DNA from: Pelomyxa schiedti
Taxonomy: Eukaryota; Protista; Evosea
NCBI GenBank assembly: GCA_020536535.1
Contig: JAHLWZ010000721.1
Location: 62,001 to 126,000 of the forward strand
Reading direction: 5' to 3'
Length of the DNA: 64,000 nt
This document shows, piece by piece, positions 33,783 to 38,384 of the stretch; the first letter of the stretch is position 1; the number at the start of each line of letters is the position of its first letter. Below the pieces are notes generated by a model. That model was not told the origin of the DNA. It saw only the letters and a program-made list of their open reading frames with translations, and did not search any database. A program made the translations under genes and the position numbers.

Positions 33783-36700
33783 TCAGAAGAGGGCAAAGCG
33801 CAGTCCAGAACTCTTTGAGACCCATGGTGTCTGCTCGTCATGAGATTCCGTCTGCACAATCTGAATGATGGCGGACTCGACGTCGTTCCACGATGTGCCG
33901 GGTTCTGCATCCTCAACAACTGGGCGTGTGTGATGTCAGAAAGTTGTAGGGGGTTGGAAATGGAGGTGAAGCAACCTTTGAGGAAACAACCAGTGAAGAA
34001 TCCATGGTTCTGCTTGTTTGGGAGAGTGCAAACATCCAGTGTTGCCCTCCCTGTGCGTTACAAAGAAGTGAAACGGGTTGATTCAGGGTGAAACCCAAAG
34101 GAGGGGGAAAAAAACCTGGGCTTGTTGGATAAATCAAAATGCACCCAGCTCGGAAATCTTCTTTCGTCAGTTGGAGTTCCTGTGTCGGCTCAGCTCCACG
34201 TGTCTGGGCCCATTTGTGAGAAAATCAGTGTGTGGCTGGCTGAATGTGAACTTGAACTCACCTTGGAGCCACCCTTCTCATTGGATTGGCGGCAAGCATC
34301 AAGAATGCCGATTGTCAGGTCAGAGTACTTCTTAATTCCATCAATCACGGTGCCAAGCATCGGTGCTTTGAGTTCCATGGCGGCAAAATCGGCCTCCTCG
34401 AAAGCAGCCTCGTCTTCTGTCATCAGCAGGAAGTTGTGCCCGTTCACCTGCCTTCCGTGCCCTGCAAAATAAAAGATGCTTGCAACCTGATGGATGTCTG
34501 TCATTCCCAAGATTCGACAACACAAGGAGACTGAATCAAACCTTGTTTCCTGCCCTTTGTTGCTTGATCAGTGTCAATTGGAATTTTCGCAAGTGGCTAT
34601 CAAACACGTCGAGATTTGAGATGTTCTTGAGGAAGAGCACTTCAAATTGACATTTGTTCTTCAAGAACTGCATTGTCCTCGATGTAAAAAAAAACAAAGA
34701 TTGTTTGAGAATCGATGACCTCACAAATAGCTTCTGCATCATTGACGGAGTTTTTGAGGGAACGTGTCCCATAAGATTCATTTCCAACAACAAACGCAAA
34801 GCACTTGTAGTTCATCTCAGCACCGAAGAGAGGTTCTGCTCCCACTGAAAAAAAATGTGAGAAAAACACAGTGGAGAGGATTGTTTTTGTTGCACCTGTC
34901 GATTTCTTGAGGGGAACCTGAGATGGTTGCTCTTGACGTCTTGATAAATGTGCTTTGACTTCGTCCACAATGAATTCTGCGTCACCGATAACGAGGCCAA
35001 GGCCACACAATTGTTGCACAGAGTAATTGGCAAGTGTTCTTCCTCTCAGTTTGGACGCTCTGATGATTTTCAGGCAGTCGTCATCCACGCCAACAGATTC
35101 AAGCCAGCAACACGTTTGTTCTGGGTTGGCTATCTGAATTTGAAATGGTGTTGCTGCAGCACTGGTGAGTTTTTCAGGTGTTGCTGTTGCGGGAGTGTCC
35201 AGTTTAGATGTTGTTGATGGTGGGTCAAACGGGGTGGATAACTTTGGAGAATTCAAAGGTGTGAGGGCTGTGGCTGTTTGTGTGTTTGTTAGAGGCGCTG
35301 AACTCATTGAGGAGTTTGGCAAGGGCAGTGGTTGATGGTTGTGTTGAGGAATTTCTTCGAGTTGTGTTACTGTTGCAGCACTTGTGAGTGTTTTAGGTAT
35401 TTGTGCAGGAGTGTCCAGTTTACATGCTGTTGCTGGTGGGTCAAACTGGAGTGATACATTTGGAGAATTCAAAGATGTGAGAGCTGTTTGTGGGTTCATT
35501 ACAGGCGCCGAATTCAGGGGTGGAGCCCTTGAAGAATTTATGGGTGAGCTGTTGAAGTTATTATCAAAGTATTCTTTGCCTCTGGCAAGGGCCATTTCAG
35601 TAGGTTGTGACCCTTTTTGAGAGAGATGGGAAGATTCAGTAGATAGCAGAATAGGGACATTGTACTGGGAGGGCGATTCTGTGAATCCAGAATCTCAAGG
35701 GGAATTTCAAAAATGGCATCAGAGGGAGTGTTTTTGGGGCCTCCTGAGACAAGCCAAAGCTCCGAGGTCAGACGGTATATAGTGCCACTAGCAGTAGGGC
35801 ATGAAAATGCAGAAGCATAAGGTTGCAGAAAGACTAGAAGAGAAGCACCCAAAGTGGGGTGTATCAGCCAGGTAAACCAAAAGAGCTGTATCTCTGTGGA
35901 TGAATTGTCACGACCGTGTTGGAACTGGGAGAGTACAATGGAACAATGAGACATACCTCCGACATGCTGAGACGTGGGTGACTTGTTCGATTTGACTGGA
36001 CAATTTTGTTTTGGAGAGTCAATCATCATTTGAGAACTGAGAGAGAGCAATCGGAACACACGTGAGAAATCCAGGCCTACTAGTGACGTGTTCGATTCAA
36101 ATGCTGTTGCAATGCTTGTTGCTTCTTCACCCCCAATCTCGTTGCCTTGGTGATGTTTGTTTTAGAGAGAGTCAACCATCATTTGGGAATTGAGGGAGAG
36201 CACCACTTATATGCAGATACACGAGTGACTTGTTCGATTCGAGTGCCCTCGCAATGCTTGTTGCTCCCTCAGTCCCAATTTGGTTGTCTGAGTGATTTTG
36301 TTTTGGAGAGTCAATTCATCATCTGAGGAACACAATGGAAACAGGCCTGGTATATACAGAAATACGAGTGATTTGTTTGATTTGAGTGCTCTCGCAATGC
36401 TTGTTGCTCCCTCACTCCCAATTTTGTTGTCTGGACGATTTTGTTTTGGAGAGAGTCAATCCTCGTTTGAGAATTGAGAAAGAGAGAGCACAATGGGAAC
36501 GCACTTGACATATCCAGGCATACCAGTGACGTGTTCGATTCAAGTGCTCTCGCAATACTTGTTGCTCCCTCACTCCCAATCTCGTTGTCTTGGTGATTTT
36601 GTTTTGGAGAGTCAACCCAGCATTTGAGAATTGAGAAAGAGAGCACAATGGAGACACACATGATATCTCAAGAGACACAATTGATTTGTTCCATTCGAGC

Positions 36701-38079
36701 GCTCTCGCAATGCTTGTTGCTCCCCCATTCCCAATCCTGTTGACTGGGTGATGGTTGTTTTGGAGGGTAAGTCATCATCCAAGAGTTGAGAGAAGAAAAT
36801 GGGAACACACGTGATATATCCAGAGACACAATTGACTTGTTTGATTCGAGTGCTCTCAAAATGCTTGTTGTGCCTTCACTCCCAATTTTATTGCCTGAGT
36901 GGTTTTGTTTTTTGGAGTCAACCCCATCCAAGAATTCAGAGAGATCACAATGGGAACACACGTGATATATTCAGATGCACGAGTGACTTGTTCGATTCAA
37001 GTGCCCTCGCAATGATTGTTGCTCCTTCACTCCCAATTCCGTTGCCTGGATGGGTTTGTTTTGGAGAGTCGATCATTATTTCAGAATTGAGAGGGAATGG
37101 GAACACGCCTGCTATATCCAGAGACATGAGTGACTTGTTCGATTCAAGTGCCCTCGCAATGCTTGTTGCTCCTTCACTCCCAATTTTGTTGTCTGGTGCA
37201 TCAGCTTCTGTGAATTGGGAGAACACGATGGGAAACACACCTGCTATACTCAGAGACACGAGTGACCTGTTCGATTCCAGTGCTCTTGCAATGATTGTTG
37301 CTCCTTCACTCCCCATTTCGTTGGCTGGTGATTTTTTTTTGGAGGGCAAATCATCACTTGAGAATTGAGAGAGGACAACTAGCACACATGATATACGCAG
37401 AGACACAAGTGATATGTTCGATTCCAGTGCTCTCATGATGCTTGTTATTCCCTCGCTCCCAATTTCGTTGCCTGAGTGTTTTTTGGAGAGTCGACCATCA
37501 CTTGAGACTTGTAGAGAGCACAATGGGAACACACCTGCTATATCTAGATACACGAGTGACTTGTTCGATTCGAGTGCCCTCGCAATGCTTCTCGCTCCTT
37601 CACTCCCAATTGCATTCCCTGTGTGATTTTGTTGAGTCCACCATCATTAGAGGAGAGAGAGAACAATGGCAGAAAGGCACATACTACTGAGATTCAGAGA
37701 CACGAGTGAGTTGTTCAATTCAAGTGCTCTCGCAATGCTTGTTGCTCCCTCGTTTCCAATTTGGTTGCCTGGGCGATTTTGTTTTAGAGGGAAAATCACC
37801 ATTTGGGAATAGAGAGAGACCCTGACGAGGGCACATACTTTCGAGTTTCAAGTACACGAGTGACTTGTTCGATGCGAGTGCTCTCGCAATGATTGATGCT
37901 CCCTCGCTCCCAACTCCACAATCCTCAAGGTTCAAGCGCCTGCAAGCACAACGTGGAATCGCCAGCTCAGCGCACACCCTCCCCAAGGTTGTGTGGCCTC
38001 CCACTTGAAAGTCAGAGGCATGGAAAGCTTGGTCACTTTGCAATAGACTGCTCGGGAGTGTTGGTCTGCGCCACAACAT
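33783..38079 (-). CDS. LRR (RI/NLRC3-type, 13 repeats) - SAM-like - caspase-like peptidase C14 protein, multi-exon
   Basis: Repeats NxIGSEGATSIARALESNKSLVxLDI; SAM-like WLESVGV..LRGRTL..LCGLGLVIGD; C14 AFVVGNESY..LKNSVNDA, FYFAGHG, ILDACR, LIYPTSPG..HGFFTGCFL..QTPWVS. Start codon and LRR-to-linker splicing are inferred. Confidence 0.75.
35960..37930 (-). repeat. Tandem array of ~150-bp exon+intron units encoding LRRs (13 full + 1 partial)
   Basis: Recurring plus-strand core gagtgacttgttcgattc.agtgc.ctcgcaatg.ttgttgctcc.tcactcccaat, with homologous intron sequence (ttttgttttggagagtca...gagcacaatgggaacac). Confidence 0.9.
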
Positions 38080-38384
38080 GGGTGGTGAACAAAATAACAA
38101 GATATTCAACGGACCTGGAACTCTAATGACTTCCAGCTTTTTTCCAAAACCAACCAGCTCCTTGACACTCTCGGTTGGTAAGTCAGTTCCCGTCCGTTCT
38201 GCGGTTCTCCTGAACTGGGGTAAAGTGCGTGCGCATTTGCGGCTGCGATGTACTTGGCAGGTTTGACCCACAGTGGAGATTGATGGTTGGGGTTTTCCTT
38301 CGTCGTTGTGTTTTGCAGTTGCAGGCACTTTAATTAATTATCTTTTCCGCGATCAAGAGCGAGCGAGAGCCAGCAAGCGAACAA

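Follow-up and report, generated by a model that had tools for sequence, protein, structure and literature searches.

In animals, caspase-fold proteases are activated by induced proximity through death-fold adaptors and nucleoside triphosphatase (NTPase) hubs, and in bacteria proteases of this fold occur in conflict systems beside repeat modules. Induced proximity and dimerisation also activate the paracaspase MALT1, which serves as a signalling protease, not as a death protease. In SARM1, a ring of SAM domains brings the effector domains together. Here we analyse a gene of Pelomyxa schiedti that encodes leucine-rich repeats (LRRs), a SAM domain and a caspase-fold protease domain of family C14 on a single chain. 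It lies on the reverse strand, from 38079 to 33783 of the window, by which we mean the whole 64,000-nt stretch that was analysed (C721:62001-126000, contig JAHLWZ010000721.1); positions below refer to the window unless a contig is named. P. schiedti is an anaerobic archamoeba whose genome was sequenced from single cells (PMC8887013), and the assembly comprises 52 Mb in 5337 contigs.

The locus is a real, intact-looking single gene for LRRs, SAM and C14 (Table 1). GenBank holds it as KAH3758988.1 (P0155, 921 amino acids) under the automatic name "Protein NLRC3 [Pelomyxa schiedti]". At both of its ends P0155 matches the window with 100% identity (residues 1-81 on 38079-37837, residues 877-921 on 33920-33786), and a look-up for contigs encoding P0155 returned none. 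The GenBank protein and our model agree completely over exons 1-2 and again from LRR 12 onwards to the stop codon, and they share the LRR-to-protease junctions. Within the LRR array P0155 reads through several in-frame introns and leaves out LRR exons 7-11, differences that look like an artefact of automatic prediction. A Pfam scan of P0155 matched no NACHT, NB-ARC, AAA, CARD, PYD, Death or Ig domain, as expected from the initial annotation of this DNA, which had proposed a receptor lacking NACHT; the name NLRC3 is misleading for this reason. All searches and folds were performed with exon pieces or with the public proteins P0155 and P0007, and the joined exons were checked for frame and length only.

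The protease domain is the best defined part of the protein. Peptidase_C14 (PF00656) matched P0155 with 76.7 bits (E 2.9e-21; cut-off 21.4) over positions 3-226 of the 233 in the profile, and the exon carrying the catalytic His and Cys reached 23.1 bits on its own. In an alignment of 59 sequences (A3), which was used for the AlphaFold2 (AF2) model and for a profile search, every sequence has the His and at least 90% have the Cys. The initial annotation had described a complete C14 fold with an intact dyad in FAGHG and LDACR, a following SKTRG segment and a p10-like part, and each of these was recovered, the p10-like part being formed by the last three exons (d-f in Table 1). The AF2 model of the SAM-C14 part of the paralog P0007 (residues 505-857) has a predicted local distance difference test (pLDDT) score of 88.7 and adopts the caspase/haemoglobinase alpha-beta fold, with a six-strand caspase-type sheet that ends in the C-terminal RFALF strand.

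When this model was compared with known structures by Foldseek, MALT1 came first (E 1.7e-12), followed by caspases 7, 9, 3 and 8. VIA-align ranked MALT1 (Z 24.4) above caspase-9 (22.4), caspase-3 (21.5) and the metacaspases AtMC4 (19.4) and AtMC9 (18.9), with lower scores for Geobacter GSU0716 (18.7), Yca1 (16.8) and TbMCA2 (13.6). Searched against PDB sequences, profile A3 found MALT1 with E 2.8e-34 and caspase-1 with 9e-14, and metacaspases were absent from the best 60 matches. The single His/Cys exon found no match in the PDB sequences, and the Pelomyxa-only profile A1 gave weak matches to the CNK2 SAM only. Along with the domain partners of the outside relatives described below, these comparisons support the placement of the protease nearest to the MALT1 paracaspase and prokaryotic caspase-like proteins and not to the metacaspases, which is where the initial annotation had put it on the basis of motifs. 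With metacaspases (types I-III) it has in common the C14 family, the His-Cys dyad and an expected preference for a basic P1 residue; they differ by their lower fold rank and by having eight strands instead of the six seen here, and the Pelomyxa protein carries no Pro-rich or zinc-finger prodomain.

The likeness to MALT1 extends beyond the best structural and profile match. The AGHG and LD-x-C-R motifs, the six strands with an exposed beta6 and the presence of a non-catalytic oligomerisation module on the protease chain are common to both proteins, as are acidic residues in the S1 pocket. In A3, the family Asp residues in NDA, LDAC (two residues before the Cys) and PGxxxxD align with MALT1 D365, D462 and E500, which hold the P1 Arg in that pocket. 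These aligned acidic residues lead us to predict cleavage after Arg or Lys. The loop after the catalytic Cys, which is disordered in the paralog model (pLDDT <50), bears a conserved (K/R)xRG motif and is a candidate autoprocessing site. The Pelomyxa protein differs from MALT1 in having neither the death nor the Ig domains by which type 1 paracaspases are recognised, in carrying its sensor repeats on the same chain and in what would be the use of SAM in place of BCL10 filaments; the two are only ~15-17% identical.

Outside Pelomyxa, the nearest proteins by sequence are prokaryotic caspase homologues (orthocaspases and EACC1-associated proteins), which match with 90-150 bits over C14 only. They show the same consensus, YYAGHG...ILDACR...PG..A.DG, and they too join the protease to other modules (TPR, WD40, Sel1, GUN4, FGE-sulfatase, PEGA and MORN). 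Extra domains are commonly C-terminal in bacteria (PMC5756287), and according to a review additional domains occur, among p20-only homologues, only in prokaryotic orthocaspases, where they are commonly C-terminal to p20. SAM was found in none of the prokaryotic homologues checked, and the Pelomyxa genes, unlike these, have spliceosomal introns. The caspase_w_EACC1 family (NF047832) scored P0007 at 24.6 bits against a cut-off of 140, compared to 96-120 bits for the nearest outside relatives.

A HMMER search with a profile of SAM plus C14 against 1.84 billion representative proteins returned 24 proteins at E <= 1e-30. All matches covering both domains (160-616 bits) were from P. schiedti, and the next tier (<=150 bits) matched over the C14 part only, with GUN4, TPR, PG_binding_1, PEGA, FGE-sulfatase and MORN as prokaryote-type partners. 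One next-tier protein has CHAT, C14 and TPR genes as neighbours on its compact contig, and a Microcystis protein belongs to one cluster. The protease part looks like a gene of bacterial type that a eukaryote acquired and then expanded. The nearest outside relatives also include a metagenomic protein, P0116, with a prokaryote-type MORN-C14 arrangement that mirrors the MORN-SAM-C14 proteins of Pelomyxa; this may be a hint that repeats and protease were acquired together, already fused.

The SAM domain was less obvious from profiles. The initial annotation had suggested profile searches for all three parts of the protein; in Pfam, Peptidase_C14 (76.7 bits) and LRR_6 (44 bits) did match P0155, but SAM_1/SAM_2 gave 12 bits on the window exon, below the gathering score. 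Of the nine family members scanned, eight gave a sub-threshold SAM match (13-22 bits) at this position, and the family member P0015, in which SAM_1 scored 55 bits, aligned in register with the window SAM, including invariant W, L, G, L and G residues. Structure was more informative. AF2 folded the window's own exon into five helices (pLDDT 85) at ~34945-35124, close to the ~34950-35130 at which a SAM-like domain had been placed before, and the top 50 PDB matches by Foldseek were all SAM domains (template modelling score 0.73-0.86; root-mean-square deviation (rmsd) 1.3-1.8 A over 65-70 residues), including those of SAMHD1, CNK2, Shank, Scm, PHC3 and DGK-delta. In the P0007 model, the SAM part aligned with the PHC3 SAM with Z 11.0 and an rmsd of 1.5 A over 69 residues. 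On the strength of these models, the fold in the window protein is that of a SAM domain.

One base difference falls within this domain. At 35054-35055 the assembly reads GA (plus strand), but each of the four DNA runs covering the locus has TT, as does one 1714-nt contig that can clearly be assigned to this locus. The change replaces Ser with Asn, turning RASKL into RANKL, the paralog consensus, and the difference is probably an assembly error or an allele.

The overall order of modules recalls SARM1/TIR-1 (ARM-SAM-SAM-TIR), in which repeats, SAM and an enzyme are also on one chain; the SARM1 SAM was a structural match with Z 10.1. The Pelomyxa effector is a protease and not an NADase, its SAM is single instead of tandem, and a ring or polymer would at most be expected by analogy.

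The LRR array has 13 RI-type units, a count that comes from the long-read assembly alone because short-read contigs collapse in the array. The units, also counted as 13 in the initial annotation, are tandem repeats of 28 residues with the form xNxIGxEGAxxIARALExNxSLxxLxIx and were located by this motif. Units 2-13 are each encoded by one phase-1 exon of exactly 84 nt preceded by AG, with GT donors in ten cases and GC in two. Since the exon length is fixed at 84 nt while intron length drifts by non-multiples of three, the array bears the signature of real introns. LRR_6 matched the paralogs with 118-162 bits; single LRR exons gave half-repeat matches only (16-18 bits), because the exon borders cut the LRR model. 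Short-read contigs were seen to join distant LRR units within 36425-38023, skipping 353, 1230 or 1597 nt.

Across the 13 units, high entropy is confined to unit positions 1, 3, 24 and 26, and the helical half is almost invariant. These positions correspond to x8, x10, x3 and x5 of LxxLxLxxNxL, which are exposed residues of the concave beta-sheet. Variability on this face is what would be expected for a recognition surface, and a ligand, if there is one, may bind there. The protein can be compared to the NLR inflammasomes (NLRC4/NLRP with caspase-1), with which it shares RI-type LRRs (here one repeat per phase-1 exon), a caspase-fold output and, presumably, the logic of induced proximity. It differs from them by the lack of NACHT, NB-ARC, CARD and PYD and by having sensor and protease on one chain. 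The same genome contains at least 10 NACHT open reading frames (ORFs). Of the five examined, four are PLA2_B-NACHT proteins with an N-terminal lysophospholipase domain, one of which has LRR_6 (RI-type), and the fifth is NACHT-WD40; NB-ARC was sought in the genome and not found. The idea that SAM might act as an adaptor to NACHT proteins was rejected, as SAM occurred in none of the five ORFs examined.

The connection of the LRRs to the SAM-C14 part was examined by comparison with paralogs. The C-terminal exon pieces tile on the annotated paralog proteins without gap or overlap, and in at least seven paralog loci the LRR array is followed colinearly by the junction, SAM and C14. When the junction was aligned in seven loci, donor and acceptor sites were conserved. 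Indels in the two flanking introns are not multiples of three, and those in the junction exon are +3, +3, +30 and a single -1; the latter is a frameshift in L027, for which the annotated gene model differs. Moreover, one unbroken ORF of a Sel1 paralog on C423 runs from the Sel1 repeats through SAM into C14 as far as the catalytic Cys. The ratios of nonsynonymous to synonymous divergence against five paralogs, given below, point the same way. A splice from 35957 to an acceptor at 35679 was considered and dropped, as paralog proteins show the exon 35893-35666 followed by the 52-nt intron 35665-35613. Joints that remove introns were sought in the four DNA runs and none was found, the joints present being repeat collapses in the LRR array. 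This comparative evidence, with the identical junctions in KAH3758988.1, favours one gene for LRR, SAM and C14, as the initial annotation had assumed.

Between the LRRs and the linker lies a stretch, LFWFTW-x-IHPTLGASLL-x-FL, that is restricted to the LRR subfamily (~9-12 loci) and had no family or Atlas match. A transmembrane helix at this position was considered and rejected, as the mean Kyte-Doolittle value is borderline (1.4-1.6) and the topology would conflict with myristoylation at the N-terminus.

The gene is a member of a lineage-specific family, with at least 24 paralogs, in which a constant SAM-C14 cassette stands behind interchangeable N-termini. A paralog census, which the initial annotation had regarded as informative, gave at least 31 genome matches to the C14 core exon (24 of them at E <= 1e-15); on these contigs the SAM exon had 28 matches. 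The N-terminal module consists of LRRs in P0006, P0007, P0012 and P0155, Sel1 repeats in P0001, MORN repeats in P0004 and P0013, ankyrin repeats with PARP_reg in P0008, Ras/Roc in P0014 and dynamin with a kinase in P0018, in which no SAM was detected. A myristoylation-type MGxxxS start is present in P0001, P0006, P0007 and P0012. Two more LRR-SAM-C14 genes (L025 and L026) lie head to tail at C721:20.1-30.1 kb; gene B corresponds to P0007 (857 amino acids), gene A is annotated as KAH3758964.1 plus KAH3758965.1, and L025 has a run of N upstream of its coding start. The genome also contains a second C14 group, distinct from the SAM-C14 family and largely intron-free, that matches Pfam better, at up to 115 bits (L001-L007; C511:3452-4195, C511:41952-42630, C511:59664-60443, C165, C406 and C694).

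In the literature searched we found no account of SAM coupled with C14, of amoebozoan caspase-like LRR proteins or of caspases in Pelomyxa, and the Pelomyxa genome paper mentions neither caspases nor LRR proteins (PMC8887013). The gene itself is already in GenBank, and its architecture and family appear to be undescribed. The GenBank names of the members, which include NLRC3, NOD3, protein kinase and caspase 8, hide the family from keyword searches.

Table 1. Positions of the exons and domains of the LRR-SAM-C14 gene in the window, and of the NACHT ORFs examined on other contigs.
Feature	Position	Strand	Remarks
Whole coding region	33783..38079	-	22 exons, 3009 nt, 1002 codons, no internal stop
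Exon 1: ATG at 38079, N-terminal stretch, LRR 1	37839..38079	-	MGxxxS N-terminus of paralogs absent
LRR units 2-13, twelve 84-nt exons	36062..37768	-	introns 48-74 nt, homologous
LRR exons 2-7	37768-37685, 37618-37535, 37471-37388, 37324-37241, 37192-37109, 37045-36962	-	
LRR exons 8-13	36894-36811, 36743-36660, 36588-36505, 36430-36347, 36287-36204, 36145-36062	-	
39-nt exon, second half of truncated 14th LRR	35957..35995	-	corresponds to P0155 residues 337-348
Junction exon: hydrophobic stretch LFWFTWLIHPTLGASLLVFL, then motif DAIFEIPLEILDSQNRPP	35666..35893	-	LRR subfamily only
Exon with Pro/Thr/Ser-rich linker (internal Met 35595) and SAM	34896..35612	-	after 52-nt intron 35665-35613
SAM domain, five helices	34945..35124	-	AF2 and Foldseek
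C14 exon a: strand beta1, helix 1, conserved NDA Asp (opposite MALT1 D365)	34720..34844	-	after 51-nt intron 34895-34845
C14 exon b	34542..34667	-	tiling on paralog proteins
C14 exon c: catalytic His 34459-34457 (FAGHG) and Cys 34294-34292 (LDACR)	34262..34486	-	Pfam, alignment A3
C14 exon d: TRG loop (candidate autoprocessing site), strand beta5	34116..34203	-	SK/TRG segment straddles the preceding intron
C14 exon e: starts RATLD; Asp opposite MALT1 E500	33976..34050	-	preceding Pro and Gly junction codon from exon d
C14 exon f: last helix, C-terminal strand beta6 (RFALF), TGA 33785-33783	33783..33919	-	
NACHT ORFs L035-L039	C682:8835, C951:4650, C231:3276, C820:108586, C185:4245		

We propose that the LRR-SAM-C14 protein is a cytosolic modular protease of a Pelomyxa-specific family that is activated by SAM-driven proximity after binding a ligand or partner, a proposal that we judge to have an even chance of being right. 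The N-terminal repeat module would bind the ligand or partner or release an autoinhibition. The SAM domains would then self-associate and gather the C14 domains, which may dimerise through the C-terminal beta6 edge, as in MALT1 and initiator caspases, and become active. The active protease would cleave after Arg, possibly first in its own (K/R)xRG loop, and lead to signalling or cell death. Ligand-triggered, SAM-driven activation of this kind is plausible, and the ligand binding, the SAM polymerisation, the activation by dimers, the cleavage after Arg and the biological role are all inferred.

Several observations weigh against this proposal. The modelled protein is the paralog P0007 (gene B on the same contig), which is 66-89% identical per exon to the window gene. 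SAM domains may also be monomeric or act as heterotypic adaptors. As canonical NACHT-LRR proteins coexist in the genome, the SAM-C14 family need not be the main sensor system. The locus is covered by four runs, all of them genomic contigs of a single sample that continue colinearly through the introns. When compared to five paralogs, the ratio of nonsynonymous to synonymous divergence (dN/dS) is 0.35-0.49 with dS of 0.13-0.39, and a ratio of ~0.4-0.5 indicates moderate constraint only. Finally, the ancestral ATG exon, the acceptor and the MGxxxS start were lost in this copy, which may for that reason be regulated differently or be decaying.

A different function for the same architecture is that the protein is a targeting protease and not a receptor. 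SAM would be a constitutive scaffold and the N-terminal modules would place the protease at membranes or substrates, with no ligand switch and no link to immunity or death. The MORN modules and the myristoylation-type MGxxxS N-termini point to membrane localisation, the Ras/Roc and dynamin-kinase partners resemble modules of signalling or trafficking and not of pattern recognition, and MALT1, the closest solved relative, is a signalling protease. However, the LRR variation is concentrated on the ligand-binding face, the tandem expansion is recent with low dS, and the N-termini are combinatorial, all three being hallmarks of recognition or conflict families. We regard a pure targeting role as unlikely.

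The 5' end of the gene raises the separate question of whether this copy is functional. In four paralogs (L025, L026, L027 and L030), the start exon ends in ATG/GT and is followed by an intron of 45-60 nt and the acceptor GAAG/GGCGC, yielding MGAE(T/Q)SS. In the corresponding stretch of the window (38079-38260, reverse strand), CAG stands in place of the ATG, TG (in GTG) replaces the AG of the acceptor, and the following stretch is 1 nt shorter; this copy instead uses the in-frame ATG at 38079, giving MLWRRP.... It may thus be a soluble variant or an early pseudogene, with the rest of the gene intact. If it were a young pseudogene or an unexpressed paralog, the ATG at 38079 would be in frame by chance and decay would not yet have begun elsewhere. 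Three independent changes relative to four paralogs (ATG to CAG, AG to TG and the 1-nt deletion) are compatible with this, as is the dS of only 0.13-0.14 to the nearest paralog, which leaves little time for decay; the runs are genomic only, and at least one sister locus, L027, is frameshifted in its junction exon. Nevertheless, all 21 introns have usable splice sites, 3009 nt remain open, the catalytic and S1 residues are intact and dN/dS is below 1 in every comparison. The replacement ATG also coincides exactly with the former boundary of exon 2 and is the start used in the public annotation. Decay is improbable in light of these features.

The initial annotation had raised the possible use of the ATG at 35595 as a separate start. 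A division of the locus into two transcription units, one for the LRRs only and one for SAM-C14 beginning at that ATG, is very improbable. In its favour are the ATG itself and the annotation of some paralogs as short or split proteins (P0005, 495 amino acids; P0010, 431 amino acids; the two entries of gene A). Against it, every paralog protein has this Met inside its chain (...RPPR-SxPxA-MA-x-A-x-GKEYF), behind coding sequence that is conserved and in frame. The exon 35893-35666 is likewise conserved, as is the acceptor at 35613, the short or split models coincide with a run of N, a frameshift or a degenerate LRR array, and the Sel1, MORN, ankyrin and GTPase relatives have their N-terminal modules fused to SAM-C14.

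Returning to proximity activation, its possible meaning lies in the family as a whole. Pelomyxa harbours bacteria and archaea as obligate endosymbionts (PMC10579272), which makes the family a candidate for the surveillance of symbionts or prey. We tentatively suggest, with more doubt than conviction, that the X-SAM-C14 proteins constitute an NTPase-independent repertoire of receptor-executioners in which diversifying sensors, SAM polymerisation and a bacterially acquired protease are combined to police endosymbionts and prey. If this were true, SAM would do the job that death-fold filaments do in animals, and the family would represent a third solution, besides those of animals and bacteria, in a eukaryote outside animals, plants and fungi, with a sensor module that was swapped many times. 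It would then offer a compact and testable model of proximity-activated proteolysis wired without an NTPase.

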